A DNA stretch of 49,677 bases from Octopus bimaculoides (taxonomy: Eukaryota): assembly GCF_001194135.2 (NCBI RefSeq), contig NC_069002.1, positions 29,977,572 through 30,027,248 on the forward strand, read 5' to 3'. A program made the translations under genes and the position numbers. Shown piece by piece: positions 63-43,066 of this stretch (positions within the stretch are counted from its first letter, which is position 1; each line of letters starts with the position of its first letter). Below the pieces are notes generated by a model. That model was not told the origin of the DNA and did not search any database. It saw only the letters and a program-made list of their open reading frames with translations.

Positions 63-270
63 CTGGGTAGTCGGCCTCTGGAGCGAATGCTCAAGAAGCT
101 GCGATGTCGGTGAACAAGTTCGTTCGGTTCGCTGTTGGAGAATGTTGGCCCCGGGTTTCGATAGCAGTGTTCATGTGTACCTTTGTAACTCGGCAGTAAG
201 ACCTGCATCCAGTCGGAAGTGTAACAACCAGCCGTGCGGTCCTCAATGGGAAATGTCAACATGGTCAACG
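63..270 (+). CDS. ADAMTSL2: ADAMTSL2-like exon, TSP1 repeat (phase 2 to phase 0)
   Basis: Acceptor ttttcAG at 61-62, donor GTAACT at 271. Reads WVVGLWSECSRSCDVGEQVRSVRCWRMLAPGFDSSVHVYLCNSAVRPASSRKCNNQPCGPQWEMSTWST, closely resembling vertebrate ADAMTSL2 as I recall it (RCWKMLSPGFDSSV...CGPQWEMSEWSEC). Orthology is from recalled sequence, not a search. Confidence 0.9.
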
Positions 271-734
271 GTAACTAAACGTTTCATTTTGTTGATCTTT
301 TCCTGGCTCTTAAAATAATTCATTCATCAACACGAATATGTCGAATTTCTTTTCTTTTCTCTTCTGCCAAAATATCAAATTCCTACCAACATTCATAGTT
401 ACATACATGAGACTATATTATGCCAAATACTGTAATATTCTGCTAAGACCTGTATACGCTATATATTACTTAGGAGTGAGTCAACTGTTATGTACAGGCG
501 AGACTATATTTTACTATATATATCAGAGCGGTTACACTAAAGGGTGGAATCACTTTATTACAACTACACTTAGGAAAGTGTATACGATTTTACTCAAGTG
601 AGACTATTCCATTGGTTGCAAGGAAGGCTGTTCAATACAAAGGAGAGATGCATTTGCTACATTCAGGAAAATCTATGATATTGTAAAAAGAGGCTAAATA
701 TTGGTTAAAAGTTTGGCACCAGGCAAGCAAGTAC

Positions 735-870
735 GGGGCAGTGTGTAAGTCTATTACATCGACCCCAATGTTTAACTGGTACTTATTTTATCGATCCCGA
801 AAGGATGAAAGGAAAAGTACCCTCGGCGGAATTTGAACTCAGAACGTAAAGACGGACGAAATACCGCTAT
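735..870 (-). mobile_element. tRNA-headed SINE family B fragment
   Basis: Reverse complement of gcggtatttcgtc...ctgagttcaaattccgccgagg...ctttcatcctttcggg.tcgataaaataagtacc. Confidence 0.8.
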
Positions 871-1241
871 ATATATATATATATATNNNNNNNNNNNNNN
901 NNNNNNNNNNNNNNNNNNNNNNNNNNNNNNNNNNNNNNNNNNNNNNNNNNNNNNNATATACAAAAAATAACACCGCTAGGCACCGCACATATCCTGAAAG
1001 CACTTTGAATATAACTGGAATTACATTTATTCCATGGTTTACTCTCGTTTTTGCAAACTGTGAGAGATAAATCAAATATCGTGTAAGAAGGATGTTATAG
1101 TCGTGTCCATTATATAATTCATGTTACACACTGGCATCCCCAGTCATTTAATCATAGCAGAATCAATGAATATAATATATACGAACAAATGCATGTTTTG
1201 TATATACATGTATATAAATATACAAGGATGTGTGTAGGAGT

Positions 1242-1289
<48 letters not shown>

Positions 1290-1314
1290 TGTGTATGTTC
1301 CTGAGTGTGTGTAG

Positions 1315-2055
1315 GTTATGTAAATCAAAAGAGGAAAGATAGTTGCAGCAAATAGTAGTAGTAATATATGGTTATGGTTGCAGAAAAGAAAGCTGTAAAG
1401 GGCAATAGAAAGTTTGTTAGTAGCAGCACAAGATCAATCATTAAGGATCATCTATGTAAAAGCTAAGACAGACAAAAAAACCAAATAGATTCCCAAAGTA
1501 GGTTATGCAAATCAAAAGAGGAAAGGGTTACTCATATAATAAATGACTGTAGCATGCTGGCACAGAAAGAATACAAGAAAAGAAATGACAATCTTGGGGG
1601 AATAATCCACTGGAAGTTATGTAGAAAGCTAGGATTTCACCATACTAATAAATGGTATAAACATGAACCTGCTAAAGTACTAGAGAATAAGAAATATAAG
1701 ATGTGGGGCTTTAACATTCAGACTGACCGACTAATAGAAGCTAGAAGGCCTGATTTGGTAGTATAGACAAAGAGAATAGAAAGCGTCAGATAAATGACTT
1801 TACAATCCCAAATGATGAGAAAGTCAATATGAGTGGCATAGAGAAAACAGTAAAGTACCAGAACCTAGCCATTGAGTTACAAAGGCTGTGGAAAGTTCGG
1901 GTAAAATGTATCCCAGTTGTTATAGGTGCATTAGGAACTATCCCTAAAGATTTGAACATATGGATAGAGGAAATAGGGATAAAACCTAGAAGGCTTGATT
2001 TGGTAGTATAGACAAAGAGAGTAGAAAATGCCAGATAATTGACTTTACAATCCAA
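1315..2055 (+). mobile_element. Decayed R4/Dong-like non-LTR retrotransposon 3' part (zinc knuckle plus restriction-like endonuclease)
   Basis: Frameshifted LLVAAQDQ...RLCKSKEERVTHII..C.MLAQKEYKKR.DNL..IHWKLC, then FNIQTDRLIEARRPDLVV and KYQNLAIELQRLWKVRVKCIPVVIGALGTIPK. Confidence 0.8.
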
Positions 2056-2160
2056 ACACACTCACACCGTATTTAAATATTATTCATTGTGTTCCGAACT
2101 TTTTTACTATTTTACTATCTTCTGTATACTCTGATTTCTCTTTGCTTCTTTTTTGGCCAG

Positions 2161-2316
2161 TGTTCTTCTCTCTGTGGTTATGGAATTCAAAGACGCCATG
2201 TTCGATGTAACTCAGGCAATGAAATACATTGTAATAGATCTACGAAACCGACAACACACCAATCCTGCTTCCACCCTCCTTGTGTCCACAGTTGGAAAGT
2301 GAAGAAATGGTCGAAG
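2161..2316 (+). CDS. ADAMTSL2: ADAMTSL2-like exon, TSP1 repeat (phase 0 to 0, 52 codons)
   Basis: Acceptor ttttggccAG at 2159-2160, donor GTAATG at 2317. CSSLCGYGIQRRHVRCNSGNEIHCNRSTKPTTHQSCFHPPCVHSWKVKKWSK; joins the previous exon in frame (WST|CS). Confidence 0.9.
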
Positions 2317-2454
2317 GTAATGGCAAAATTAAATGTCTTTTCTTCACAACTTTTCTTTTGAAACAGCAAATTCCAAAGGGTTCTGTTCTACTCGTTTGTT
2401 GGAATTTGTTCTGTCAGTTTGATAGAAAATCTGGTCAACCATTTTGATAGCCTA

Positions 2455-3015
2455 TGTTCTACACCCAAGGGAATAAACGGAGATGGTATGCATCATGCTA
2501 TTATGGAGGGAAGAATAAGAAAGGAGCACTATAGGAGAATAAGACTTGTATTGAAGACTGAACTCAGCTCAACAAATCGCATCGATGCCATTAACACTCT
2601 GGCACTTCCAGGAGTCCAGTACAGTTTTAACACCATTAACTGGAATCCTACAGAGCTCCAAAGCTTGGACAGGAAGACAAGAACATGTAAGAACATGTAC
2701 CGTCGGAAAGCAGACGTTCACCAGCTGTATCTACCTAGAAGCATTGAGAGAAGAGGAATGATGCAATTAGAACTGGGCTATAAGGCCTCCGCTATAGGAG
2801 TGAACAGGTCCGTATATAGTACAGAGGACTGGATGCTGTGATTTGTGTGTGAACATGAAAGTAGGAAAAAGTCGCATTCTGTTGTCAAGGAGGCTTATAA
2901 ATTCGCAAAGGAAGTTGGCATTAATCCTGAATTGGATGAAATAACCTGAAACCACTGCTACCAAGCAAGCAAAACGAATGAAGAAGACTGCAAAAAAGAA
3001 CGGGCAGAAAAAAAA
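2455..3015 (+). mobile_element. Decayed R4/Dong-like LINE fragment (post-RT region)
   Basis: EGRIRKEHYRRIRLVLKTELSSTNRIDAINTLALP..QYSF..INW...LDRKTR...KADV.QLYLPRS..RRG..QLE, the region just downstream of RT in RLE-type LINEs. Confidence 0.75.
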
Positions 3016-3349
3016 TTGAGGAGCGGTGGAGTCAGAAGCCCCTGCACGGTCAGTATATTCTTCGAGGTCAAAATGACGAAGATGATTGTGATGACGACGA
3101 CGACGATTGTGATGATGATGACAATGACGACGATGATGACGACGACGACGGTGACGACGACGACGATAATGATGACAATGACGACGACGATGATGAAGAC
3201 GATGGTGCTTCTGCTTCGGTTGAAGTTGCTATTGTTTCGGTTGTGACGTTTTCTTACTTAAAAGAAAACGTGCGCGCGTGGAACTTTGAGTGTTGAATCA
3301 ATGTTGTAACACAGTTGAATCATCTTTGCGTTCTGTTTTTGGTTTCCAG

Positions 3350-3523
3350 TGCAACGGTCCGTGTGGCCGCGGTGTACAGCATCGGGACGTGATATGCGTT
3401 GACCGAAATGGAATTAGAAGCGACATCAGATCCTGCGATAAAAACACCAAACCACAAACGGTACAAGGATGTGGCTTTGCACCATACTGTCCGTCGATGT
3501 GGGTGCCACAGGCTTATGACACG
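3350..3523 (+). CDS. ADAMTSL2: ADAMTSL2-like exon, TSP1 repeat (phase 0 to 0, 58 codons)
   Basis: Acceptor tttccAG at 3348-3349, donor GTGAGT at 3524. CNGPCGRGVQHRDVICVDRNGIRSDIRSCDKNTKPQTVQGCGFAPYCPSMWVPQAYDT. Confidence 0.9.
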
Positions 3524-3625
3524 GTGAGTAGATTTTCGCTTTATTTATTACAGAAAATAAGGTAGCACAGATTTTTATGATTTTATTCAGAAAATTAGGG
3601 AACACAAGTTTTTCATACATTAAAT

Positions 3626-3999
3626 AGGCGTGGCTGTGTGGTAAGAAGTTTGCTTCTCAACCACATGGTTCGGGATTCAATCCCACTACGTGGCACTTTG
3701 GGCGGGTGTCTTATACTGTAACCTCAGGGTGACCAAAGCCCTGTGAGTGGCTAAGGGGTGGGCTGAGGGGTGCAAGGCAAAAGGGGTTAGCGGCTGCGAA
3801 TATGCCGCTGGCACTGTCCCACAATTCACATACTTGCAATATCTGTGGACGATTTCGTTGGCGGGGCCCAAATGTCGCATTTGACATAAGCATTATGACT
3901 GACAAAGAAAGAGTAGGTTGCTAAACCCTCATACATCGAAACCGACGGGAGGTCCCTCATATGTATGTGTGTATGTGTGTGTGGATATATATGTGTGTA

Positions 4000-4033
<34 letters not shown>

Positions 4034-4312
4034 CATATGTGTGTGTATATACATATGTGTGTGTATATACATATATATATATGTGTGTGTGTGTGTGAGT
4101 GTGTTTTTGTGTTTGTGTGTCCTCCGCCACCACTTGACAACCGGTGTTGGTGTGCTTACGTCCCAGTAACTTGGTGGTTCAGCAACAGAGACTGATAGAA
4201 TAAGTACCAGGCTTAAACAATAGTAAGCACCGGGGTCGATTCTTTCGACTAAAATTCTTCAAGACGGTGCTGCAGTATGGCCACAGCACCGTCTGATACA
4301 AATAAAAGATGA
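3626..4312 (+). mobile_element. tRNA-headed SINE family A (CORE-like), split by an insert and microsatellite
   Basis: A-box TGGCTGTGTGG, B-box-like GGATTCAATCCC, ggcactttgggc core; 3' half at about 4110-4312 (ttgacaaccggtg...gtcgattc...cgactaaa...). Confidence 0.8.
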
Positions 4313-4879
4313 AATATATAAGATATTACCGCAAGCTTATGATACCGAAAGTAAATGAAATCATAGAAAGTTGGGTTCTACGGAGCTTATAAATACTTTG
4401 AATAAATTAATCCATATTGAAAACTGAGTGCCACAGGCCTAGATACCGTGGAGTAAATATAATTTAATGGAATATCTGACACCAGAAAATGTATGCATTG
4501 TATTCGTTCTGGAATGCACTCGCAAACTGAAGCTAATGCTGTGAATATACATACTTGTGTAACTGTGGCTAATATCAGGTAATGTTATATAAATGCAATA
4601 ATTATTATTAATTAAATTTCAGAGCTCTTGTACGAAACAATAAAATAAATACACAGATTCAGAACATAAACATTTATTGAATTAAGATTAAACAAAATAA
4701 GACAAATTACACATTTGTATATCTGCCAGAAATGTATGTTATTAACAATACTTGTACTGTTTAACCATTAAAGTAAAATTATCTGAAAGTACTAAGAATT
4801 ACGAAAGTATGTTACCAACATTTACTATCAAATGTTATGTGACACATATTCTAGTTGGTATTTATTACTCAAGGGAGAT

Positions 4880-5115
4880 AAATCCGATGAGATCAGATTT
4901 ATCTCCCTTAGAGGGACGCGCAAACAGCAAGCTTTTATGAACAGGGTTAAGTGGATGGTATCTACTCCAGTACTTGACTGGTACTTTATTTTCTGGACTT
5001 CAGAAGGATGAATGGTAAAGTTGACTTCAATGGGGTTTGAACTCAGAACGTAAAGAGTCAGAAGAAATACTGCGAGGCATTCACTCCAGCGATTCTAACA
5101 GCTCGCCTCGCAACA
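4880..5115 (-). mobile_element. SINE family B, diverged
   Basis: gttctgagttcaaaccccattgaagtcaactttacc...cattcatccttc...aaataaagtaccagtcaagtactggag. Confidence 0.7.
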
Positions 5116-5119
5116 TTAA

Positions 5120-5122
5120 TGC

Positions 5123-5213
<91 letters not shown>

Positions 5214-5234
5214 CCTACCTACCTACCTACCTAC

Positions 5235-5292
<58 letters not shown>

Positions 5293-5420
5293 CTATGTAT
5301 GTATGTATGTATGTATGTATGTATGTATGTATCTATCTATCTGTCTGTCTGCCTGTCTATTTGTCTATCTGTCTATCTGTCTGTCTATCAATTTATCTCT
5401 CTATCTATATCTCCCTATCT
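5120..5420. repeat. Compound (TCTG)n(TCTA)n(CCTA)n(TATG)n microsatellite
   Basis: Direct reading; produces the low-complexity parts of ORFs 5037..5741 and 5119..5436. Confidence 0.95.
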
Positions 5421-5519
5421 ACTCGATCTAGAATAGAATGGAAGCTCTATTCTCTCCTATATTATAGAACAAACGCCAGACGACATCACAATTATCCTGA
5501 AACATATTTCTCTTTTCAG

Positions 5520-5699
5520 TGCTCAGCTTCCTGTGGCCAAGGAATTGTAACCAGGAAAGTAGTTTGCGGACGCGTGGTTCGAAACAGTTTCCAGTTGCAA
5601 TCAGATGCCCACTGTCGCCATAAACCTCGGCCAACAAGTACAACCACCTGCACCGCGAAACCGTGCCTCTCCAGCTGGTATGTCACAGAATGGTCAAAG
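5520..5699 (+). CDS. ADAMTSL2: ADAMTSL2-like exon, TSP1 repeat (phase 0 to 0, 60 codons)
   Basis: Acceptor ttttcAG at 5518-5519, donor GTAAGT at 5700. CSASCGQGIVTRKVVCGRVVRNSFQLQSDAHCRHKPRPTSTTTCTAKPCLSSWYVTEWSK. The expected last TSP1 and PLAC exons were not found downstream on +. Confidence 0.9.
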
Positions 5700-5769
5700 G
5701 TAAGTTTGATGAGATTTGACCAAAGGAAAAAGTTCTTTTAATCTTTTATCATCTTTTCATATTCTTTTA

Positions 5770-5945
5770 CTCGCGTTAGTCCCTGGATTGCGGTCATGCT
5801 GGAGCGCAGCCTAGGAGTGCTTAGTCGAACAAATTGACATTAATACTTATTCGTCCTAAATCTGGTATACATTTTATCGGTCCCTTCTTGCCGAGAAGCT
5901 AGAGAGTACAGGGACGTAACCAAGCCAACATTTGTTGTCAAGGAG
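5770..5945 (-). mobile_element. SINE family A 3' half
   Basis: Reverse complement of ttgacaac...cgactaa...gctccagcatgaccgcaatc. Confidence 0.7.
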
Positions 5946-6034
5946 CATGAAGACAAAGACGATGGGATGTGAGCACATACATGTACAATGTGTATAATAA
6001 TACACACGCATACACACGCATGTGCATACATCTA

Positions 6035-6107
<73 letters not shown>

Positions 6108-6142
6108 TATATGTATGTATGTGTGAGTGTATACACATAGAA

Positions 6143-6191
<49 letters not shown>

Positions 6192-6287
6192 CACACACAA
6201 AGTATGGGGATTTAGTTCACAGGTGATCTAAACGATTAGGTACCCTTGGTAACAGGTGTAACGGATTACTAGGGCTCCACGGTTATA

Positions 6288-6571
6288 GCCGAGACGGTAG
6301 TTATGGAGCCATTGTAGATTTCCGATACAGCCGATATATAATTGTTAAAGCGGACAACAGACATTAAGGCAAGGCAAACATCTCAAGTCATATACAATAT
6401 TATTATTGGAAAAAAATTCAAAGTCTTACAGCTGTTTCTGGGATATTCCAGAGTATGGGACATTCCGTCATCAGAGACTAATAGGGAGAATGAGAAGGGT
6501 ATATATTAATGAAATGATGACATAGAGGAAGGGAGTAAGGGAGGATATGGCTCCATAACTACCGTCTCGGC
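6288..6571. repeat. 284-bp segment bounded by a perfect 25-bp inverted repeat
   Basis: gccgagacggtagttatggagccat (6288-6312) and atggctccataactaccgtctcggc (6547-6571). Confidence 0.85.
6422..6479 (-). ncRNA. Minimal type I hammerhead ribozyme motif (same family as 38539)
   Basis: On -: agtct CTGATGA cggaatgtcccatactctggaatatccca GAAA cagctg TA agact: 5-bp stem I, identical stem III and cleavage site, degenerate stem II. Confidence 0.6.
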
Positions 6572-6787
6572 ATATAAATACATACATACATACATATATA
6601 TATGTGTGTCTGTTTATATANNNNNNNNNNTTTGTGGAAGAAACTTACCCCAGGTATCGTGCACTGGAACTGAACTCGAAAACACCTGGTTGCAAGCACA
6701 CTTCTTAACCACAGAGCCATGCTTAATCTTTCATATTTCATGGAACCATTTTGCATGTAATTCTCTAAAAATATAAGAAACACCAGC

Positions 6788-6985
6788 AAGCCGGGCGATA
6801 TGCTTCGCGGTATTTCGTAGCTCAAATTCCGTCGAGGTCGACGCTGCCTTTCATCCTTTCGGGGTGGATTAAATAAGTACCAGTTACGCACTGGAGTCGA
6901 TATAATCGACTTAAAATCCTTTTGCCTGTCCTTGTTTGTCCCCTCTATATTTAGCCCCCACGCTGTAAGTAATAAAGAAATAAAT
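6788..6985 (+). mobile_element. SINE family B
   Basis: gccgggcga...ctcaaattccgtcgaggtcgacgctgcctttcatcctttcgggg...aagtaccagttacgcactggagtcgatataatcgactt. Confidence 0.8.
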
Positions 6986-7614
6986 ATACTGTGGCAGACA
7001 ACCTAACTATAACCCCTTTCTTCTATAGACAAATAACCATAGTAAAGTAATTACTTTCACTTCTTTAAGAATATTTGTCAGCAGCAACATGTGTACAGCG
7101 CCGAAATATATACGTTACGATATTTAGCGCGCTGTTTCTGAGTTATGAAGCTAACGTATGTCAGAATCGAGAAAATCTTCCAACAATCCGGTGTCGATAA
7201 ACTAAATAATTCACTTAATTCGTTCGACTGTTTAACACATCTTGCAGAAATCAGACAACAGCCTAGTCACAACAGATATTTTTTTTATAATAAGCTTCTG
7301 GGAGAATACAAAGTGGTTAGGACGGCACGTACTTAGTAAATGTAGTACGTAAAATTTCTCCAGTTGAAGCCTTTTGGAAATACACAAATATTATATATCA
7401 TGTGATATTATTGGGGGTAGATGGAAATTGAAAAGGAGTGGGTGAAGGTGGTAGGGGAGAAGTGATTTGACTAGTTTTCTCCTTTTATGGAAATCAGTTT
7501 CTATTCTCCTCTAGAGTGTGTGTGTGTGTGAGTGTTTCTGAGTCTGTATATACATACATGTATANNNNNNNNNNNNNNNNNNNNNNNNNNNNNNNNNNNN
7601 NNNNNNNNNNNNNN

Positions 7615-7659
<45 letters not shown>

Positions 7660-8100
7660 ATGTACGTATGTGTATATATGTGATTTTATGGATATATGAA
7701 AATGTAGGTGTGTGTAGATTTGTGCACGTGTGTAGATTTGCGTGTATATATTTTTATATATGTGCATATGTGTGTTTGCTGGGGATAATAGTGGAGATAG
7801 TGGAGCGGCGTGGGACAATGGTGAATATGTTGGGTACTAACCAACATGGCCGCAAGTAGAAGTAAAACAACAAAAACGACAAAAACAAGAACGACAACAA
7901 CAACAACAACAATAATGGTAGCAGAAATATGGCTTTAATACAGCATGAGACTAAAGTTTTAGAGAGAAACAATATGAGAGTGAGAACGAAAGAGAGGCAG
8001 AGAGAGAGAGAGAGAGAGAGGGGGGAGAAAGAAGGAAAGAAAGAGGGAGTGGGAGCTTGTGGGAAATAAACGATTACCAAAGAGGTGTGAAGCAATAACT

Positions 8101-8372
8101 ACGGTTTGATGATGACGACGACGACGATGATGATGATGATGATGAGGATGAGGATCATGATGATAATGATGGTGATGATGGTGGTGATGATGATGATGAT
8201 GATGAGGATGAGGATCATGATGATAATGATGGTGATGATGGTGGTGATGATGATGATGATGATGAGGATGNNNNNNNNNNGATAATGATGGTGATGATGG
8301 TGGTGATGATGATGATGATGATGAGGATGAGGATCATGATGATAATGATGGTGATGATGGTGATGATGGTGG

Positions 8373-8404
<32 letters not shown>

Positions 8405-8480
8405 GTGATGGTGATGAGGATGATGGTGATGGGGATGATGGTGATGATGGCCACGAAGACGATGATGATGATGACGACGA
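8101..8480. repeat. (GAT/GGT)n repeat with 60-bp higher-order unit
   Basis: Lines starting 8161 and 8221 are identical up to the gap; the unit resumes after the 10-N gap. Confidence 0.9.
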
Positions 8481-8691
8481 CGACGATGGTAGTGGTGGTG
8501 GCCGCCGTCATTCTCTTCCTCCTCCTCCTCATTCCTTTCTTCTTCATTCTCATCGATGTCATCAGCAGCAGCAGCAGCTTTTGTAGCAACAAGATTTCTA
8601 CCAGCACAAAATCTCCAACAAAAATCAATAGTAAAGCAAAATAATAGCCGCATAAACCATCGACAGCACCCACATCTCCCCCGTTATCCAC

Positions 8692-8728
<37 letters not shown>

Positions 8729-9329
8729 ACACACACACACACACACACGCAGCTAAACACGTACACATACATTTACATAAACGCTTACATGAGCACATGC
8801 TAAGCAATACACGCGTACATATGCATATACATACATACACATACGCACATAACATACGCATATGCGTATATGTACACACATACACACACATAAACACCGA
8901 TACGTATAGAGAGACATGCACCACAACACTCAATATATACATCCACAACGAAAGTGTTGAATCGTTTTCTGTAGAGGAAGCAGACATGTCAAGCCGCATT
9001 CATCCACTTCTGCCCCTCCACAGCCTCCTTCCTCATCCCTACCCAACTACCAGCCAACCGTCTTCACCATCCCTTCGTCAATCTCCATCTACCCATTACG
9101 ACAGACACCCTGTCAATCTCACACGATCCTCTCACTTGAAATGATTCACTTTCACTCCGTCACACCTTCCATCCATTACAAATGTCTTAAAAGTTTTTAC
9201 GCTTTTCTTTCTATTTTATTCGCTTCTCTTTTTTTTTTACTAGTTGCAGTTCGATAGTTGCGGCCATGCTGGGACACTACCGTTTTTGCTTAATTTTTTT
9301 TCCCGCCATTTTCGAAACAGAAATAGAGA

Positions 9330-9500
9330 ATTTGTGATTGTGTGGTTAAGAAGCTTTGCTTCGCAACCACAAGGCTTCAGGTTCAACCATAAAGCGTGGC
9401 ACCTCGAGCAGATGTCTTCTACTATAGCTCTGGGGTCGGATCAAAGACTTGGAAATGAATTTGGAAGAAAACTGTGTAAAAGCCTACCCTGTGTATATCC
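9330..9500 (+). mobile_element. SINE family A 5' half (ends at gap)
   Basis: tgtgtggttaagaagctttgcttcgcaaccac...ggcacctcgagcagatgtcttctactatagc. Confidence 0.7.
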
Positions 9501-10741
9501 GACNNNNNNNNNNNNNNNNNNNNNNNNNNNNNNNNNNNNNNNNNNNNNNNNNNNNNNNNNNNNNNNNNNNNNNNNNNNNNNNNNNNNNNNNNNNNNNNNN
9601 NNNNNNNNNNNNNNNNNNNNNNNNNNNNNNNNNNNNNNNNNNNNNNNNNNNNNNNNNNNNNNNNNNNNNNNNNNNNNNNNNNNNNNNNNNNNNNNNNNNN
9701 NNNNNNNNNNNNNNNNNNNNNNNNNNNNNNNNNNNNNNNNNNNNNNNNNNNNNNNNNNNNNNNNNNNNNNNNNNNNNNNNNNNNNNNNNNNNNNNNNNNN
9801 NNNNNNNNNNNNNNNNNNNNNNNNNNNNNNNNNNNNNNNNNNNNNNNNNNNNNNNNNNNNNNNNNNNNNNNNNNNNNNNNNNNNNNNNNNNNNNNNNNNN
9901 NNNNNNNNNNNNNNNNNNNNNNNNNNNNNNNNNNNGGTGATATAAGCACACACATGCACACACATGCACACACATGCACACACATATACGCCAATACACG
10001 CATTCAACCTGTGTACAATCACATATACAGATATAAACACATTCACGCACATTTACGTACATACCTATACGCACATATGCAAGAATCCTTATTTAACCTT
10101 ACAAGACCACAAACACATATGAAACCAACAGATATGCAGGTATATAGAGATAAGAACACAAACAGACATACACACACATGCACTCACATACACTCTCTTA
10201 TACATATAAATATTTGTATACCATCGCATGCACGCAACACGCACCGATACACATATATGGATATAAACGCGCACAACTCACACATGCATATATACACGCA
10301 TACACTTATGTTCCGTGAAGATATGACAGTTTCACCATTTTAGAAAAATAACGGGACTTAATCTCACTTGACATGTTGAAAGAGAAAAATACGGAAAGCA
10401 AATAAAAGAAGAAAAACTCAACGTTATAAGCACACAAATTCAAGCACTCGTTTACAACCTTGTTTGCACTTGCACACAACTTCACACAAACGTACACAAC
10501 TTTGCACATGCTTACACAACCTTAGAAACACGTACGCTCAGACACGTGCACGCACAAGTACACACGTCTTTTTTTACAGAGAGGAACAAATATTCCACAG
10601 AGGGATTGGCAGTGATCCTCAGAGACACATACACACATACATACATATACATAGATGCATACACCCATAAATACATACATCCATAAATACATACATACAT
10701 ACATACATACATACATACATACACACAAGCACACAAAGGCA

Positions 10742-10813
<72 letters not shown>

Positions 10814-10894
10814 TTGGTAATGAACTAAAACGTGAGTGATGGACACCGCACTGGTGGATGAGTAACATGTGTCATAATAATAATAATAATAATT

Positions 10895-10925
<31 letters not shown>

Positions 10926-11305
10926 TGATGATGATGAAAACGCCGATGATGATGATGCTGAATGGTTATGATGACGATGATGGTGGTGATGATTTCTTTA
11001 ATTTGTTATACGCAACAGACAAACATATATAAACATGTGCGCGCGCGTGTGTGTGTGAGAGAGCGAGAGAGAGACAGAGAAAGATAAAAAAGAGCGAGAG
11101 TGTATGAAATACAGAACTACAGACTAGACTATGACGTTTTGCCGATAACGGTTTGTCAAACAATCGGCCGAGAAGTTCGACGATTCTCTACCGATAAGAA
11201 ACCAGTTAGCTGTCTTGAGAGAATGGTACACACACACACACACACACACACACAACGCATATATGTATCTGTATTTATCTACAAGGAATATATATACACA
11301 TATAT

Positions 11306-11418
11306 TCCGGGTTCAGTCCCACTGTGTGGCACCTTGGACAAGTGTCTCCCACTATAGCCTCGGGACGGCCAAAGCCTTGTCAGTGGATATGGTAGACGGA
11401 AACTGGAAGAAGCCCGTC

Positions 11419-11460
<42 letters not shown>

Positions 11461-11665
11461 NNNNNNNNNNGTGTCTGTTTGTCCCCTCATCATCGCTTCA
11501 CAACCGATGCTGATGTGTCTATGTCCTCGTAACCTAGCGGTTCAACAAGAGAAACCGATAGAATAAGTACTAGACTTACAAAGAATAAGCCCCGTGGTCG
11601 ATGTTTTCGACTAAAGGCGGTGCTCCAATATGGCCGCACTCCAATGACTGAAACAAATAAAAGAA
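11306..11665 (+). mobile_element. SINE family A, 5'-truncated, gap in internal (TA)n
   Basis: ccgggttcagtcccactgtgtggcaccttggacaagtgtc...aagcccgtcgtatat(n)...gtgtctgtttgtcccc...tgactgaaacaaataaaag. Confidence 0.85.
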
Positions 11666-13530: not shown

Positions 13531-14239
13531 CCTCCACAGTACAGGTGAGATTTTCTACAGAGGGGGGAAGCGAGGAACTGGTTCTGGTGCCTATCTACCT
13601 GGGTTATTGAGTAGCAAGAATTTAAATTAGATATATTCTACCAGAAATAGACATCAGCTGGGTGGTGCCAGCTGTCCTTCTGAGGTACAGAAGCTGCAAG
13701 AACAAAACTAGTTGGGTCAAGGCATGGAGTTGTGGGTGCAGTTGGATTAGGAAGTGTAGGAGCAATCCCGGACATCATAAGTTTGTCAGATGACACTAAC
13801 CTTCATATGGTCGTTGAGGGCAGAAAGTTGAGATATCACCTGTGTGGAGATACAAATCCACAGCTAAATGAAGAAAAGTACACTCCTGCCAACACGACTA
13901 TTACAAAAGCAATAACAAGGGCAACAACATGGAAGGTGACCGCTACAGCAGCAAAGCAAAAACAACAACAATAACAGCAACAGAATTACGGTAGTATCTA
14001 CAGCAGTAGCGACAACAGCAACAAGAACAATAACAGTTGGAGCAGAAAACTCACCAACATCAGTCTTCGACATTCCAGACAGCAGCAAAACAACGGAGTC
14101 AGAATCACCAAAAACAAAATATTTATTAACAGAACAGCAAAAATCGCCCCAAAACATACCCCTCTCCTTTTCGGACCCCTCGAATATGTCTTGTAATGAA
14201 GGGGAAAATGAAGAGCGTATATTGCAAAAAAAGTCGCCA

Positions 14240-15185: not shown

Positions 15186-15187
15186 TG

Positions 15188-33601: not shown

Positions 33602-33696
33602 TGAGGGAAGAGAGAGGGAGTGAGGGAAGAGAGAGGGAGTGAGGGAAGAGAGAGGGAGTGAGGGAAGAGAGAGGGAGTGAGGGAAGAGAGAGGGAG
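33602..33696. repeat. 19-bp minisatellite, 5 copies (tgagggaagagagagggag)
   Basis: Five exact tandem copies counted. Confidence 0.9.
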
Positions 33697-33925
33697 AGGG
33701 AGAGGAGGGGAGGCGAGATGGAGTAGAGAACACTCGTATAATATAATCCTGGATCATATTATAATCATCATTATCATCATCAACAGCATCAACAGCATAA
33801 TCATCACTATCATCATCATCATCTTCATCATTATTACCATCAACATCCTTATCGCCACCTTCAACCCCTATCACCGACGCCATCATCGACATCATTGTCA
33901 TCGTAATCATCATCATCATCATCAC

Positions 33926-33957
<32 letters not shown>

Positions 33958-34091
33958 CATTGAACGACCATGTTTCCATGCTGGCATGGCTTGGAAACAA
34001 AAATTACAAACGGGATAGTCACGACTGGAATAAAGGCCTGGGGGCGAACGAGATTAAACAAGAACAGCATTAAATAGCAAGCAACTACTAC

Positions 34092-34134
<43 letters not shown>

Positions 34135-35274
34135 CAGCAATTGATGCTGCTACTACTACTGCTGCTACTACTACAATTTCTTATCGCTGTCATCTCATCT
34201 GATCAAAATGAAACCCTCTCGGAAAGTAGAATGTCTTCGAGGTAAACCGAGTTTCTGATATTCGACTCAGCATCTGTTTCCTTATCGAATGGAAGTTTAC
34301 AAAATAATCTCCTGTGTCTATCGATGTCGGTCATTGCTCGAGGCTTCACTGCGAGCACAATAAAGTGGGAGGCTATAGCATCTAAGGGAAGTAATTCTGT
34401 CAAAAGGTTATTCAAGCATTATTGAATTTAATAAGGTCTTTTTTATTTATTTTTTTGGTGGTGGGGAGGAGTCGTTTTGTGTGTGTGTGTATGAGTGTGT
34501 ACGTATGTGTGTGAATGTATGTGTGCGTGTGCTTGTGCGTTTTAAACAAAGAAGCAAGCCAAGATATGCTTGTGGAGTAATGACGTTGGTAGAATTTATC
34601 TGGCTTATATTATTAGTACTTACTCAACAAGGGAGATAACAACTGATTTTTTTCCCTAACCAGTCATTCTACGCCTAGAGAGCAATTCGGAAAATTTCTC
34701 ACTAACCGCAAAGACCTAAAAGGGGCTCATTTATATATATATATATATANNNNNNNNNNGTCAAACTCTGTTTAAGGAGTAGACAACCACCATGTATGTA
34801 TGTATGTGTCTTTGATGCATGTGTAGGAATGTGTAAGTGGAAACAAGATCTGAAGAAATAGCTCAGAAGTCTTCTTCGCAATTATGAAGGTTCGATCTAA
34901 GGAAGAGAATCTTGAAAGTGTATTTTACCTTAGCCGCCTTGAATTGATCCAAGCTTTCTGAAACTGAGTGGATTCCCTTTTTAAATTCCTTGTAGCAGAA
35001 GTAGAAAGCTTCAACATTTTTTACAACCGGTGTCACGCTGATTTTACATGGAAGTTGCTTTATGGGTACACGTATGTGTGGAATATTCGGTCACTTAAGG
35101 CTAGTTCGCTGACTGGGTAGTTTATTTGATCGTACGAGGGGAAAACGCATCATCGAAAGCGGTGAAAGATCACTTTAGCCAAACCACTACATAAAGAAAA
35201 CCACCGAAATCTGATTGAGTGTTCGTGTGTGAGTCTAGAGGATGCTTGTGCTTATATTCGCATATACAAACATA

Positions 35275-35338
<64 letters not shown>

Positions 35339-35661
35339 NNNNNNNNNNNNNNNNNNNNNNNNNNNNNNNNNNNNNNNNNNNNNNNNNNNNNNNNNNNNNN
35401 NNNNNNNNNNNNNNNNNNNNNNNNNNNNNNNNNNNNNNNNNNNNNNNNNNNNNNNNNNNNNNNNNNNNNNNNNNNNNNNNNNNNNNNNNNNNNNNNNNNN
35501 NNNNNNNNNNNNNNNNNNNNNNNNNNNNNNNNNNNNNNNNNNNNNNNNNNNNNNNNNNNNNNNNNNNNNNNNNNNNNNNNNNNNNNNNNNNNNNNNNNNN
35601 NNNNNNNNNNNNNNNNNNNNNNNNNNNNNNNNNNNNNNNNNNNNNNNNNNNNNNNNNNNNN

Positions 35662-35709
<48 letters not shown>

Positions 35710-36104
35710 GTATGTATGTATGTATACATGTGTGTATGTATATGTGCGGGTGTATGAGTATGTATGTGTGTGTGTGTGTGTGTGTGTGTTATGTGTGCAA
35801 TGTAGTAATGTTTTCAAGAGGAACTTAGTCACAGCTGACATTTCCAACAAAATAATCGCTAATCGTTCCTAAGCTGTCATATTTCTACATTTACAGACGA
35901 AAACATTGAAACGCACACATACACACACACACAAACACACATATATTCTTACACGCACATACCCACATTTTCATACACACATTCATGCACACATACACAT
36001 GCTCATACGCGCGTACACACACGCATAGTTACACGCATACATTCATATAAACATATACACACATATTAACACACATTTATACACCCTCACAGATATTCAC
36101 ATCG

Positions 36105-36295
36105 GTGCTCTCCTTTTCTACTCTAAGCACAAGGCCCGAAATTTGTGGGGAGGGTGCCAGTCGATTAGATCGACCCCAGTACGCAACTGGTACTTAATTT
36201 ATCGTCCCCGAAAGGATGAAAGGCAAAATCGACCTCGGCGGAATTTGAATTCAGAACGCAAAGACAGATGAAATACCGCTAAGTATTTTCCACGG
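36105..36295 (-). mobile_element. SINE family B
   Basis: Reverse complement of aaatacttagcggtatttcatctg...ctgaattcaaattccgccgaggtcgattttgcc...aagtaccagttgcgtactggggtcg. Confidence 0.85.
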
Positions 36296-36309
36296 AACAC
36301 CTTGGTTAT

Positions 36310-36790
36310 ATAAGACCTACGACTACCGAGGTATTGCTGAAGACATTCTACAGGAAGTTGCTCTGAACCAATATTGAGCAATCATAGAATATTGTATCAG
36401 ACCCAAACTAAAGATATAGCAGTCAGAAGCTTCCTCTTGTAAGACAATATCCCACAATGCATTTGTAGTACCAGTGCTGATACGAATCTTAGCTTCAAGC
36501 GCCACCAGCCGAGGCTCAGCAGCTTGTCAGGTTGAGAAAAGCAAACTGTCAAAGTATTGGTCACTCTCTGATAGGTTTATGGTCAAGCTTGCGGTAGTGG
36601 AAACCTCCGGCGTTCTTGGTCCCTGCTATCGTGAAAGGAGATGGCTATCCGCAAGTGTAAGCCCCGAGGATCTGAGTGACTGTTCCAGCACATCTCTCTC
36701 ACCTTCCTCCAGGGCCAACGCCTTTTCCATTTTATCTTCTTGGACCATGAGACGGTCTGAATTACAGGAAATCCAGAGAATTTAGGCATT
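36310..36790 (+). mobile_element. Decayed CRE-like non-LTR retrotransposon C-terminus
   Basis: RGSAACQVEKSKLSKYWSLSDRF...AVVETSGVLGP...RANAFSIL matches the K..KY..L...F.P.A.ET.G..G / GNA C-terminal pattern of CRE-clade elements. Confidence 0.6.
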
Positions 36791-36992
36791 TCCTAGCTTA
36801 CTACACGAGCAATAAACCTATACAACCCCTCACACATAAATTCTGCTCTAGATTTCTCTACCATATAATTGTTGTTGTCTATCAGTTATATCCTGTGTAC
36901 AATATTATTCATCATACTTTATAACAGGACCTAAAACTTAGTGAGTGCAAAACAAACTACTTAAACATTAGCCCATGCTACATACACTGCGT

Positions 36993-37379
36993 GGAGGCGC
37001 AATGGCCCAGTGATTAGGACAGCGGACTTGCGGTCGTGGGATCGCGGTTTCGATTCCCAGACCGGGCGTTGTGAGTGTTTATTGGGCGAAAACACTTACA
37101 GCTCCACGAGGCTCCGGCAGGGGATGGTGGCGAACTCTGCTGTACTCTTTCACCACAACTTTCTCTCACTCTTTCTTCCTGTTTCTGTTATGCCTGTAAT
37201 TCAAAGGGCCAGCCTTCTCACACTGTGTCACGCTGAATATCCTCGAGAACTACGTTAAGGGTACACGTGTCTGTGGAGTGCTCAGCCACTTGCACGTTAA
37301 TTTCACGAGCAGGCTGTTCCATTGATCGGATCAACTGGAATCATCGATGTCGTAAGCGACGGAGTGCCAACAACAACAA
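36993..37379 (+). mobile_element. Full-length tRNA-headed SINE family C with (CAA)n tail and 100-bp flanking direct repeat
   Basis: A-box TGGCCCAGTG, B-box GGTTTCGATTCCC, ends gcgacggagtgccaacaacaac; flanked by 36891-36990 and 37380-37479 (9 mismatches, no indels). Confidence 0.9.
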
Positions 37380-37514
37380 TCCTGAGTACAATATTATTCG
37401 TCATACATTATAACAGGACCTAAAACTTAGTGAATGTAAGAGAAACTACTTAAACATGAGCCCGTGCTACATACACTGCAAAAAACCTCAATCAGAAAAG
37501 ATGATAATACATAC

Positions 37515-38328
37515 TAAGATGTGATGACTTCCTCACGCCTTTCTTCCGGTAGGTATTCAAGTTCTCTTTGACCGTCGACAGGGCAGGAAGGAAAACGGGA
37601 AATCGCTTTTTCTTCGGGGAGCTAACTTGAACACTTTCATTTTGATTATTTCTTGCTTTTCTTTGACGTTGAGAAATCGAAGAGATTTTCGGAAAATATC
37701 GAGCGGTTCTGTTTTTCGTGTTGCTTTTCTCCAGCGTCCTATTTTTATTCGTTTTAGTCTTGCTTCGTTTCCTACTTTTCGAAGTTGACGAAAATGTCGG
37801 TGATGAAGACGGAGATACTATTTTCACATAGATATGCTTCCTGAGTTCCTGGTTTCTATCATGTATTGAAAGTGCCAAAGGTAAAGGAGATGCTGGTCCT
37901 AAAGAAGAATAATAATGAATATTTCGCTCCTCTACACGTCTGTGATTGTTCCTGTGGTGTTTCTTACTAACTTTGCTATCGTTTACATTAGCTGAATAAG
38001 CGTCGCTTTCTTTAAACTTTCCTGGTGATATATTCGGCCCATACGAAGACGGAGCTGTCTTGAAGTGCCCATCAGAAGGATATACAGACGAAGCGGGATG
38101 TGGTCTTAACAATGCTCGCGTAGCTAATCCTTCAGTTGGGTTCTTACTGTGAGGACGGGCATGGACTGGATTATAGTCAAAGAAGAGCTGACTGTCCAGA
38201 AGTGTTTGCCATGTAAAACTCGGTTCATTTTTCACTGTCATTTCCTTACTTTTTATCGTGGCGTTGTTGAATGTAACTATGTATTCGTACTTCAGCTGAA
38301 TATCTGTGTTCTTCTTTGACGTGAAACC
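37515..38328 (-). CDS. ADAMTSL2: ADAMTSL2-like large exon: end of spacer domain plus long basic linker (phase 0 to 1, 814 nt)
   Basis: On -: tatttccAG|GGT TTC at 38328, donor ctt a|GTATGT at 37514. 271 stop-free codons in non-repetitive DNA, starting GFTSKKNTDIQLKYEYIVTF (spacer-terminal YEY motif) and ending RKKGVRKSSHL. Overlaps track ORF 37492..38241. Confidence 0.85.
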
Positions 38329-38334
38329 CTGGAA

Positions 38335-38338
<4 letters not shown>

Positions 38339-38408
<70 letters not shown>
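38339..38408. repeat. (AAT)~23 microsatellite abutting the splice acceptor of the large exon
   Basis: Ends about 8 nt upstream of the AG at 38330-38329 on the - strand. Confidence 0.95.
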
Positions 38409-38409
<1 letters not shown>

Positions 38410-38538
38410 CCGGGCTTCTTTTCAGTTTCCGTCTATCAAATACGCTCACAAGGCTCACTTCTGTTTTTTCTTCCTCCACTTCACTCTGTATTTCATATCT
38501 TCTTTATAATAACTATTGCTTAACCGTTTTCTCGCACC

Positions 38539-38586
38539 GTCTCTGATGAAGGGATATATAAAACATCCCGGAAACAGCTGTAAGAC
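38539..38586 (+). ncRNA. Minimal type I hammerhead ribozyme motif (Penelope-type)
   Basis: gtct CTGATGA a gggat-atataaaac-atccc g GAAA cagctg TA agac: stem I gtct/agac, stem II gggat/atccc, palindromic stem III cagctg, GUA cleavage triplet. Confidence 0.7.
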
Positions 38587-38665
38587 CTTCTCTTTATAAA
38601 TGTTCTGGAATCCTTCATAGCCTTGGATTTGATTTTTTATTTCATTCTGCTAATTATATATATAT

Positions 38666-38778
38666 ATATATTAATAATTTAGAGAACAACCACCAAGATG
38701 CAATCCAAACAATGATGGTGACTGATCTCCCTCATTGTTTGGATTGCATCTTGGTGGTTCTCTAAATTATTAATATAT
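38666..38778. repeat. Near-perfect 47-bp inverted repeat (16-nt loop)
   Basis: 38666-38715 and 38732-38778 are reverse complements except for a 3-nt aac insertion in the left arm. Confidence 0.9.
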
Positions 38779-39582
38779 TTTTCATTACAAAATTCAATTT
38801 GATATTATTAATTTGAATATCCTTGTAAGTTTAGATTTTGACATTCNNNNNNNNNNNNNNNNNNNNNNNNNNNNNNNNNNNNNNNNNNNNNNNNNNNNNN
38901 NNNNNNNNNNNNNNNNNNNNNNNNNNNNNNNNNNNNNNNNNNNNNNNNNNNNNNNNNNNNNNNNNNNNNNNNNNNNNNNNNNNNNNNNNNNNNNNNNNNN
39001 NNNNNNNNNNNNNNNNNNNNNNNNNNNNNNNNNNNNNNNNNNNNNNNNNNNNNNNNNNNNNNNNNNNNNNNNNNNNNNNNNNNNNNNNNNNNNNNNNNNN
39101 NNNNNNNNNNNNNNNNNNNNNNNNNNNNNNNNNNNNNNNNNNNNNNNNNNNNNNNNGGCTGTCTAAGCTCTTTGACATATATTTGTTTTTTATTTTCATA
39201 CTTACAAAAAAAAAAAAAATTCCAAAATCTACAAATTAATATTAATCCATTACTTCCCATAATTCTATTAACTGGAATTTTTTATGAAACTTTGATTTCT
39301 AGCATAAAACAGACTTAGAAACACGCTGGAATGATCAAAATAACATTTCAAAATAACATTTTAAATAGAAATAAGCGAGATATTGGGTGAAAAATTAGCA
39401 AACCTCATTTGAATATCAGAGAAATATACCTAGTAGATATAGCAAAAAGGTTAGATATGTGTAAATATTGACAGATAATTATGAAATTTGTAATTTTTAA
39501 GTGATCTCATATGAGATCACTGGTAGGTAATGGGTTAAAACAAACGAGAAAATAGGAAAATATTAAAAGGTTTCCGACTCAC

Positions 39583-39758
39583 AAGGACTACAAGGTCTCT
39601 GTCTATGGTTCCTTCCGCGTGAAGTGTCTCCAATCCTCTTGCTTTGTAGACAGAATGGTGATAATAGAAGATGGCACCAGACACCAGTTTGGTGACACTG
39701 GGAGACTTCTTGTTGGTATTACCATTCAATAAATACTCGCCTTCTTCACTGCGGAGTG
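39583..39758 (-). CDS. ADAMTSL2: ADAMTS spacer-domain exon (phase 1 to 0, 176 nt)
   Basis: On -: gattcAG|ca ctc cgc...gtc ctt|GTGAGT. (A)LRSEEGEYLLNGNTNKKSPSVTKLVSGAIFYYHHSVYKARGLETLHAEGTIDRDLVVL, typical spacer motifs (AL...GxYxLNG, ETLxAxG). Phase fits both neighbours. Confidence 0.9.
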
Positions 39759-40287: not shown

Positions 40288-41374
40288 GTGTGAGTGAGTG
40301 TGTGTGAGTGTGCATATGTGTGTATATATGTGAGCGTGTATATATGGGTACAAGTGTACGTCTGCGTGACAATGTGTGTGTTAGAATATCTGAGTATTTC
40401 TCTGTGTATTTGTCGTTGTGAGTGTATGTGGATATGGTTGCATGTGTATGTGTATGTGAGTTTCTTAATTTACGCAGAATACGTACATGTTTACACACCG
40501 CTATGAACTCCTAGTTCCTAAATTTAATGGGAAAAAAAGGGTGAGTCTGTTGGTGTAATAGTTCAGCACATTTACCGCGTATTAAATGTCCATTTTTTCC
40601 CCGTTAAGTGTTATATGCCCGAATATTAGATTATTTTCGATAATCAATATACAGTGAAGGCTTAAAATTATATCCATAATATATATATATGTATATGTAT
40701 ATGTATNNNNNNNNNNNNNNNNNNNNNNNNNNNNNNNNNNNNNNNNNNNNNNNNNNNNNNNNNNNNNNNNNNNNNNNNNNNNNNNNNNNNNNNNNNNNNN
40801 NNNNNNNNNNNNNNNNNNNNNNNNNNNNNNNNNNNNNNNNNNNNNNNNNNNNNNNNNNNNNNNNNNNNNNNNNNNNNNNNNNNNNNNNNNNNNNNNNNNN
40901 NNNNNNNNNNNNNNNNNNNNNNNNNNNNNNNNNNNNNNNNNNNNNNNNNNNNNNNNNNNNNNNNNNNNNNNNNNNNNNNNNNNNNNNNNNNNNNNNNNNN
41001 NNNNNNNNNNNNNNNNNNNNNNNNNNNNNNNNNNNNNNNNNNNNNNNNNNNNNNNNNNNNNNNNNNNNNNNNNNNNNNNNNNNNNNNNNNNNNNNNNNNN
41101 NNNNNNNNNNNNNNNNNNNNNNNNNNNNNNNNNNNNNNNNNNNNNNNNNNNNNNNNNNNNNNNNNNNNNNNNNNNNNNNNNNNNNNNNNNNNNNNNNNNN
41201 NNNNNNNNNNNNNNNNNNNNNNNNNNNNNNNNNNNNNNNNNNNNNNNNNNNNNNNNNNNNNNNNNNNNNNNNNNNNNNNNNNNNNNNNNNNNNNNNNNNN
41301 NNNNNNNNNNNNNNNNNNNNNNNNNNNNNNNNNNNNNNNNNNNNNNNNNNNNNNNNNNNNNNNNNNNNNNNNNT

Positions 41375-41680
41375 GGAGGCGCAATGGCTCGGTGGTTAAG
41401 GCAGCGGACTCGCAGTCGTAGGATCACCGTTTCGATTCCCAGATCGGACGTTGTGAGTGTTTATTGGGCGAACCGTTTCTTCCTGCTTCTATTGTACCTG
41501 TATTTCAAAAGGCCAGCCTTGTAACACTCTGCGTCGCGCTGAATCTCCCCGAGAACTACGTTAACGGTACACGTGTCTGTGGAGCGCTCAGCCACGTGCA
41601 TGTTAATTTCACGAGCAGGCTGTTCCGTTGATTGGATCAACTGGAATCCTCGCCGTCGTAACCGACGAAGTGCCAGTTAG
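41375..41680 (+). mobile_element. SINE family C with internal deletion
   Basis: Same head (ggaggcgcaatggctcggtggttaaggc) and tail (cacgagcaggctgttccgttg...cgacgaagtgcc) as the 36993 copy. Confidence 0.85.
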
Positions 41681-41979
41681 TGATCTATATTAACAAATAT
41701 ATACAGGGTGCGGAAGAAATAACGCCTTTTTGTATTTGAGTTTTCTAGATTCTAATTAAGTTTCTTTTTTTTTATTTCCTAATATTTCTGCGATGTTTAT
41801 TTTTTCTATTTCCTAATACTTCTTCGATGTTTATTATTCGGTTCTTTCAGTAATACAAAAAAATTGTGTTCATCTAAAAATTTACTTAATAAACATTTAT
41901 ATACTATAAAAGTTATTAAATGCAAAAAGGGTGTTACTTCTGTTGCACCCTGTATACAGGCGCAGGAATAGTTGTGTGG

Positions 41980-42205
41980 TTAGAGCTGGCAGAAACGTTA
42001 CCCCACCGGGCGAAATACTTAGCAGTATTTCGTCTGCCACTACGTTCTGAGTTCAAATTCCGCCGAGGTCGACTTTGCCTTTCATCCTTCCGGGGTCGAT
42101 AAATTAAATACCAGTTACGCACTAGGGTCGATGTAATCGACTTAATCCCGTTGTCTGTCCATATTTGTTCCCTCTGTTTAGCCCCTTGTGGGCAATAAAG
42201 AAATA
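41980..42205 (+). mobile_element. SINE family B, near full length
   Basis: gagctggcagaaacgtta...ctgagttcaaattccgccgaggtcgactttgcc...tgggcaataaagaaata. Confidence 0.85.
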
Positions 42206-42289
42206 AGAAGCCCCCTTCCCAACCACATAGTTCCAGGTTCAGTCCTACTGCGTGGTACCTTGGGTAATTGTCTACTACTGCTTTCTTTG

Positions 42290-42725
42290 CTTGAAAGTCT
42301 GGTATTTATTCTATCAGTCACTTTTGTCAAACCGCTAAGACATGGGGACGTAAACACGNNNNNNNNNNNNNNNNNNNNNNNNNNNNNNNNNNNNNNNNNN
42401 NNNNNNNNNNNNNNNNNNNNNNNNNNNNNNNNNNNNNNNNNNNNNNNNNNNNNNNNNNNNNNNNNNNNNNNNNNNNNNNNNNNNNNNNNNNNNNNNNNNN
42501 NNNNNNNNNNNNNNNNNNNNNNNNNNNNNNNNNNNNNNNNNNNNNNNNNNNNNNNNNNNNNNNNNNATATATATATATATACGACAGGCTTCTTTCAGTT
42601 TCTGTCAACCAGATACACCAACGAGGCTATAGTAGAAGACACTTACAGAAGATGCTACGCAGTGGAACTGAAACCGGAACCATGTGGTTGGGAAGCAAGC
42701 TTCTCACCACACAGCCACGCCTGCT
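42290..42725 (-). mobile_element. SINE family A, both halves across a gap
   Basis: 5' half at about 42575-42725 (gcgtggctgtgtggtgagaagcttgcttcccaaccacatgg) and 3' half at about 42290-42358, same orientation. Confidence 0.75.
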
Positions 42726-42985
42726 CCTATATATAAATACATAAAGTTTCAAGGAATATTTACACCGCGTTCGGCGACCGAGTTCTAATTTATATCTCAG
42801 TCAGACTCACAAAGCCAAATAAGTTTAACGACACAACCTTGCTCTACGGAGACTCTCGATCTTCTAGAAATAGCAGTCAATTCTTCATGTCCTACTGTAT
42901 CACATCTTAAAGAAGACAAATTAACTTCTCATCAACAGGAATTAATGAGAAGTAGTTAATTAAGAAAGTTAAGTTGAATATTTAC

Positions 42986-43066
42986 CTAGAATTATGTTGC
43001 CTTCTGCTCTAGCAAATATCTTGATTTTCCTTGCAAATTTTGGTAAACGAAGAAGTTCCTCGTAGC
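42986..43066 (-). CDS. ADAMTSL2: ADAMTS spacer-domain first exon (phase 1 to 1, 81 nt)
   Basis: On -: tattccAG|gc tac gag...att cta g|GTAAAT. (G)YEELLRLPKFARKIKIFARAEGNIIL(A), equivalent to the GY...IPxGAxxIxI...L|AL spacer start; the split codon g+ca gives Ala into the 39758 exon. Absent from the ORF track. Confidence 0.85.

Follow-up and report, generated by a model that had tools for sequence, protein, structure and literature searches.

In vertebrates, ADAMTSL2, the gene mutated in geleophysic dysplasia, encodes a spacer, a long linker and a run of TSP1 repeats, in that order. We analysed a stretch of 49,677 nucleotides (nt) of Octopus bimaculoides DNA, the whole of which is called the window below, in which exons for these modules of an ADAMTSL2-like gene lie on opposite strands, as two halves pointing at each other. 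Phase-compatible exons of one protein on both strands are known from Drosophila mod(mdg4), where opposite-strand trans-splicing yields a single mRNA; a small scaffold commonly ends up the wrong way round at a Hi-C join. The opposed halves are complementary pieces of a single O. bimaculoides ADAMTSL2-like gene, and we consider it very probable that their opposite orientation is a scaffolding artefact. The window is 100% identical to chromosome CM046622.1 of the O. bimaculoides assembly GCA_001194135.2, its base 1 being record base 29,977,572; the wider locus on this chromosome is referred to as L001, with window 1-25578 equal to L001 9860-35437 at 100%, and comparisons with O. sinensis were made on L002, the gap-free PacBio contig VCDQ01004419.1.

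Complementary exon sets of one ADAMTSL2-like gene

An earlier note, made from the letters of the window, had proposed eight exons with their phases and two domain sets, and all of this held up: each of the eight exons lies where it had been placed, is flanked by AG at the acceptor and GT at the donor side, and is open in the frame given. The exons are listed below, with residue numbers, in amino acids (aa), referring to the O. vulgaris ADAMTSL2 protein.

42986-43066, minus strand: spacer exon E1 (81 nt), residues 287-314, 96% identical to protein P0033, matching Pfam ADAMTS_spacer1, with AG/GT borders and an open frame
39583-39758, minus strand: spacer exon E2 (176 nt), residues 314-372, 92% identical to P0033
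37515-38328, minus strand: exon E3 (814 nt), the end of the spacer and a long low-complexity linker, residues 373 to ~643, 89% identical to P0033
16784-16888, minus strand: exon E4 (105 nt, phase 1-1), the first half of a TSP1 repeat (…YSWRANIISPCSLTCDTG), with its O. sinensis ortholog at L002 11455-11559 and AG/GT conserved
63-270, plus strand: TSP1 exon A (208 nt, phase 2-0), residues 687-755
2161-2316, plus strand: TSP1 exon B (156 nt), residues 756-807, 100% amino acid identity
3350-3523, plus strand: TSP1 exon C (174 nt), residues 808-865
5520-5699, plus strand: TSP1 exon D (180 nt), residues 866-925

Concatenation of the minus exons (phases 1-1, 1-0, 0-1 and 1-1 from the exon lengths) gave an open frame of 391 aa comprising an ADAMTS spacer (Pfam ADAMTS_spacer1, E 4e-13), the linker, for which the 814-nt exon E3 encodes ~270 low-complexity residues, and half a TSP1 repeat, while the plus exons (2-0, 0-0, 0-0 and 0-0) gave an open frame of 239 aa with four TSP1 repeats (Pfam TSP1_ADAMTS x4, E 2e-45). 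Each exon in the window matched a distinct and consecutive part of the O. vulgaris protein at 88-100% identity, and therefore no part of ADAMTSL2 is duplicated in the window, in line with the earlier observation that no domain is common to the two sets. To the right of the window, further N-terminal exons (O. vulgaris aa 136-287) lie on the minus strand at the equivalent of window 71277-85956, so that the right scaffold carries a long colinear 5' part of the gene; across 102 kb, N-terminal exons occur on the minus side only and TSR exons on the plus side only. The missing exon between the two sets, the last TSP1 repeat and the PLAC exons were not found by tblastn (E<=50) in the window or in the 9.9 kb upstream of it, which bears out the statement that the last TSP1/PLAC exons do not follow base 5699.

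As to the nature of the gene, it is an ordinary ADAMTSL2-like gene, or ADAMTSL2 orthologue, for a secreted matrix protein, with very long introns; the domain plan is TSR1, cysteine-rich module, spacer, linker, C-terminal TSP1 repeats and probably PLAC. The ancillary modules occur here without protease or disintegrin, with the spacer in the window and the cysteine-rich and TSR1 exons on the same strand to the right of it; in O. vulgaris, the ortholog shows TSP_1 (108-161), ADAMTS_CR_3 (229-273) and the spacer (278-390), and it lacks a peptidase domain. The long linker is followed by a C-terminal TSP1 run, of which the window holds four repeats and a first half, with six TSP1_ADAMTS stretches recognized by Pfam in O. 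vulgaris. In the closest-relative test, a one-way homology search without phylogeny, the non-octopus matches listed were ADAMTSL2/ATL2 or unnamed orthologous entries (E 3e-86 and weaker), none carrying another family name. Likeness to vertebrate ADAMTSL2 extends from the order of spacer, long linker and TSP1 run to recognizable sequences at the exon junctions (…YRWK…CS.TC.TG and …RWE…WSECSR.CG.G…). The octopus gene differs in an identity of only ~40% in the TSP1 region, in an unrelated linker sequence, in a far larger gene span (245 kb in O. vulgaris) and in that no PLAC domain was recognized: searches of the window, L001, L002 and the further O. bimaculoides segment L003 gave no PLAC exon, and the end of the O. 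vulgaris model (…CEDDAAINCQYVRRIQQCQSSYFKK…) shows a partial cysteine pattern and no Pfam PLAC match.

Across the junction between the two halves, the exons keep a colinear order in the long-read assemblies of two congeners, O. sinensis and O. vulgaris. On L002, the plus strand throughout carries E4 (11455-11559), an additional exon X (25745-25871) and exons A-D (33639-39443). Exon X, with AG/GT borders, 127 nt and 43 residues, runs from phase 1 to phase 2 and completes the TSP1 repeat begun by E4; it is the single exon of about 43 aa, phase 1 to 2, that the earlier note had expected between the sets. The RefSeq protein XP_029656792.2 of O. sinensis joins E4, exon X and exons A-D, reading …YSWRANIISPCSLTCDTG followed by IQLTFFSCFNIRLEKVEDKFCDGQAQPDPSYHECTRKECPAR and WVVGLWSECS…, and in the O. 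vulgaris assembly, based on Oxford Nanopore Technologies reads, CAI9738799.1 is a 1021-aa protein of one gene on one strand spanning 245 kb, covering 100% of the reconstituted 673-aa protein at 91% identity. Colinearity in O. vulgaris is taken from this one-strand gene model and that in O. sinensis from DNA alignment. Exon E4 (105 nt, phase 1-1) is included in the O. sinensis model and skipped in the O. vulgaris 'isoform X1' model (…ARKASHLS|IQLTFF…), either by alternative splicing of half a TSP1 repeat or by an omission in annotation.

Comparison of exons A-D with those of O. sinensis revealed 17 synonymous changes and one non-synonymous change (omega 0.015), with every splice site conserved. 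Because of this ratio, the four exons are under strong constraint. This agrees with functional coding exons, and in an orphaned 3' fragment it would be surprising, except after a very recent break.

The switch of orientation and a default-size gap

Alignment of the window and L001 to L002 by blastn yielded three colinear pieces, and the gap next to the first of these is given with them.

L002 8101 to 17652: window 22238 to 12404, minus strand
L002 24818 to 30576: L001 1914 to 7316, upstream of the window, plus strand
L002 33629 to 40968, the end of the O. sinensis contig: window 53 to 7404, plus strand
Window 12304-12403, no strand: gap of exactly 100 N, CM046622.1 ~29,989,875-29,989,974, probable boundary of the mis-oriented scaffold

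Upstream of window base 1, the plus block thus continues for at least 8 kb. By position, exon X belongs in O. bimaculoides between L001 2516 and 4008, within a 682-N gap (L001 2533-3214) ~7 kb upstream of base 1, and since its place falls in this gap, no tblastn match to exon X was obtained in any O. bimaculoides DNA examined. That exon X maps inside the plus block fits what a flip of that block requires. At the other side, the O. sinensis match of the minus block reaches the last base of its contig, window 12404, which adjoins the 100-N gap. The 102 kb made up of the window, L001 and L003 contain 41 gaps with sizes between 10 and 2531 N; among them this is the only one of exactly 100 N, and the change of orientation therewith coincides with a join made by the scaffolder.

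GCA_001194135.2 integrates new Hi-C data with the published shotgun assembly (HiRise, juicebox), and 'the default gap of 100 bp' is named in the supplement of the assembly paper (PMC9068888). The shotgun assembly, made from Illumina reads in 2015, was re-scaffolded by Hi-C and no gap was closed. Taken together, the gap of exactly 100 N, the equal default size of a join gap and a re-scaffolding by Hi-C alone identify 12304-12403 as the Hi-C join of two original scaffolds. With 20 N runs in 49.7 kb, the window comes from a very fragmented assembly, and a later paper says that 'many gene annotations remain fragmented' in it (PMC10925132). The window itself is cut exactly between two large gaps: base 1 is preceded by 2531 N (L001 7329-9859), and base 49677 is followed by 1900 N; its ends are no natural boundaries, and exon A lies just 62 bases from a gap.

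Following the minus match, the 7.2 kb of L002 17653-24817, within an O. sinensis intron, contain large (TATC)n, (ATGT)n and (GATA)n arrays and a 154-nt tandem unit. About 10% of this stretch consists of perfect short-period repeats, a share not above that of the flanking intron, and the stretch is without an assembled O. bimaculoides counterpart: window 7405-12303 and L001 1-1913 gave microsatellite matches only when compared with it. Short reads tend to fail to assemble through sequence made of microsatellite arrays, and we surmise that this repeat-bearing 7-kb intron stretch is probably the reason why the short-read scaffold broke there.

A mis-join would then have come about as follows. The original short-read scaffold ending at window 12303 would carry exon X (lost in a gap), exons A-D and the sequence up to 12303, and Hi-C scaffolding, which does not orient small scaffolds reliably, would have joined it the wrong way round to the neighbour starting at 12404, which bears the N-terminal minus exons. 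The join would fall in the intron whose O. sinensis counterpart is the 7-kb stretch with large microsatellite arrays, presumably left unassembled by short reads. Turning the left scaffold round would put all exons on the minus strand, in the order found in O. sinensis and O. vulgaris, and the joined product expected would read …CSLTCDTG-IQLTFFSCFNIRLEKVEDKF…CPAR-WVVGLWSECS….

Which gap holds the breakpoint had been put differently in the earlier note. Its leading explanation, a block in the wrong orientation between a point upstream of base 1 and a gap beyond 5699, was supported by every test run. It had set aside the gaps at 8271-8280 and 11461-11470 as sites of the break, rightly so, as a (TGA)n array runs over the former and a copy of a short interspersed nuclear element (SINE)-like family at 11305-11667 crosses the latter in one orientation. 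Its own candidate, the gap at 9504-9935, found no support; the SINE argument on which it was based neither supports nor excludes that gap, and 12304-12403, which it had listed merely as a place to check, is the better candidate, having exactly 100 N and a match that ends at 12404.

Artefact, inversion, paralogs or trans-splicing

In several respects the locus resembles a Hi-C orientation error of the HiRise type affecting a small scaffold: the change of orientation falls on a join of the default 100 N, scaffolding started from a fragmented short-read assembly that had not been improved, the long-read assemblies of relatives are colinear, and the gene is cut into two convergent partial models. 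It differs in that the error is here read from comparison and not from assembly records (the AGP file, the Hi-C map). Given the exon content, the two colinear relatives and the position of the 100-N join, we infer that the O. bimaculoides genome itself would also be colinear at this locus. Several points weigh against a scaffolding artefact. Colinearity was seen in two congeners only and not in O. bimaculoides itself, for which HiFi and IsoSeq data exist under BioProject PRJNA1076263. The DNA examined stops short of the left end of the mis-oriented scaffold, so that the flip is reconstructed over part of it only, and the contigs at 7615-12303 have no independent orientation, since L002 reaches no further than the counterpart of window base 7404. 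In addition, the protein collection searched yielded no O. bimaculoides mRNA or protein that spans both halves; a chimeric query (the junction plus the C-terminus), directed at junction-spanning or PLAC-bearing O. bimaculoides models, returned no octopus protein besides P0001. Real inversions of megabase scale between O. bimaculoides and O. vulgaris have been reported (PMC10700109), so inversions do occur in the genus.

Three points speak for a real inversion, fixed or polymorphic, with a breakpoint in the intron after E4 that splits and inactivates ADAMTSL2: the layout stands in a deposited chromosome assembly, megabase-scale inversions are on record for this pair of species, and the colinear evidence comes from congeners. 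We nevertheless regard such an inversion as improbable, since it would have to coincide with a default-size Hi-C join gap, and would leave an orphaned 3' half with four intact exons, an omega of 0.015 and conserved splice sites, which is unexpected for a dead fragment unless very recent; moreover, ADAMTSL2 stays one gene in two congeners and across vertebrates. Stated more broadly, it is hard to credit that the opposed layout is real, be it as a recent or polymorphic intragenic inversion breaking ADAMTSL2 or, far less likely, as a break rescued by cross-strand trans-splicing, with the halves still pristine because the event would be young.

A tail-to-tail pair of ADAMTSL2 paralogs, each partly seen in the window, is what the two convergent RefSeq models, both called ADAMTS-like protein 2, would suggest at first sight. 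This explanation was rejected as contradicted by the complementary exon sets and the single gene in relatives, and we give it next to no credence: the sets complement each other exactly and share no exon, they correspond to separate parts of a single O. vulgaris protein, and the O. sinensis contig holds both as one gene. Furthermore, no second full-length octopus copy appeared in the best 120 of 203 matches (a list that leaves out the known P0001 and P0032), and the division of N-terminal exons solely to the minus side and TSR exons solely to the plus side holds over the whole 102 kb. Equally remote is a real opposed layout expressed as a single mRNA by opposite-strand trans-splicing, for which only the layout itself and the intact, phase-compatible exons can be cited. 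The likeness to mod(mdg4), namely phase-compatible exons of one protein on both strands, is superficial, as the octopus layout is unverified, there is no joined transcript in the protein collection searched and no array of alternative 3' exons, and relatives are colinear. In close relatives this protein comes from a colinear gene, the layout itself is most likely an artefact, and the connecting exon X lies in the plus block, so that the arrangement gives no call for trans-splicing, which was rejected as unnecessary.

RefSeq models and intronic repeats

A scaffolding artefact bears directly on the annotation of this locus. RefSeq shows a convergent layout of a 215-aa TSR gene on the plus strand (XP_052831642.1) and a 466-aa spacer gene on the minus strand (XP_052831643.1), both named 'ADAMTS-like protein 2', and these are fragments made by the scaffold error, each with a spurious end. 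The product of the plus exons matches, at 100% identity, a protein that shares its 90% cluster with XP_052831642.1 and the O. sinensis protein XP_029656792.2; look-up of the exact 255-aa product P0001 returned no record. Of the models of the 5' half, XP_052831643.1 (466 aa) and the older UPI00071D3CF7 (542 aa) each have a spurious terminal exon of their own in the intron after E4, at 15875-15886 ('ESKV*') and 13801-14190 on the minus strand, the latter lying inside the same contig. The clusters of P0033 and P0034 yielded only the older 542-aa O. bimaculoides model, the extra residues of which derive from the spurious exons at 13801-14190 minus. Such differing ends are the behaviour of a gene predictor when the true downstream exons are absent from its strand.

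For biology little is at stake, the gene being a conserved extracellular-matrix gene in its usual form. For annotation, the analysis places a probable mis-join at CM046622.1 ~29,989,875-29,989,974, in a cephalopod reference that is in wide use; this mis-join would explain the two truncated RefSeq proteins XP_052831642.1 and XP_052831643.1. We suggest that complementary opposite-strand gene halves flanking a gap of exactly 100 N serve as a simple diagnostic in scans of Hi-C-rescaffolded short-read assemblies, to be read as an orientation error until long reads show otherwise.

The SINE-like family, present also in O. sinensis, has a 432-nt unit whose head and 3' half are conserved and which holds an internal (TA)n(TG)n tract at 166-228; the head was not called as a tRNA, and ARAGORN found no tRNA in the window. 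Several copies lie in the introns; the copies are as follows.

16165-16596: SINE-like copy
18077-18692: SINE-like copy
11305-11667: SINE-like copy
9339-9474: SINE-like copy, unit positions 17-151
3625-3750 and 4050-4309: SINE-like copy in two parts
15185-15403: SINE-like copy

Because the remaining ~280 nt of the copy at 9339-9474 fit within the 432-N gap 9504-9935 and no SINE 3' half, in either orientation, follows that gap, the CA-rich sequence after it says nothing either way.

Two stretches of the introns are without a counterpart in O. sinensis. About 1 kb at window 14257-15298 is absent there, with the flanks at 14256 and 15299 meeting at L002 ~15974-15997; open reading frames at 14281-14901 and 14916-15275 on the plus strand carry a reverse transcriptase-like 'RQGCPLSSLL' motif, and Pfam gave no match for these frames (14281-15275, plus), which had been suspected to be a retroelement fragment. 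The intron between exons A and B measures 1890 nt in O. bimaculoides vs. 124 nt in O. sinensis (L002 33847-33970), and the ~1.77 kb at window 340-2107, including the gap 887-955, are probably a lineage-specific insertion, as parts of them match repeats elsewhere in the locus.

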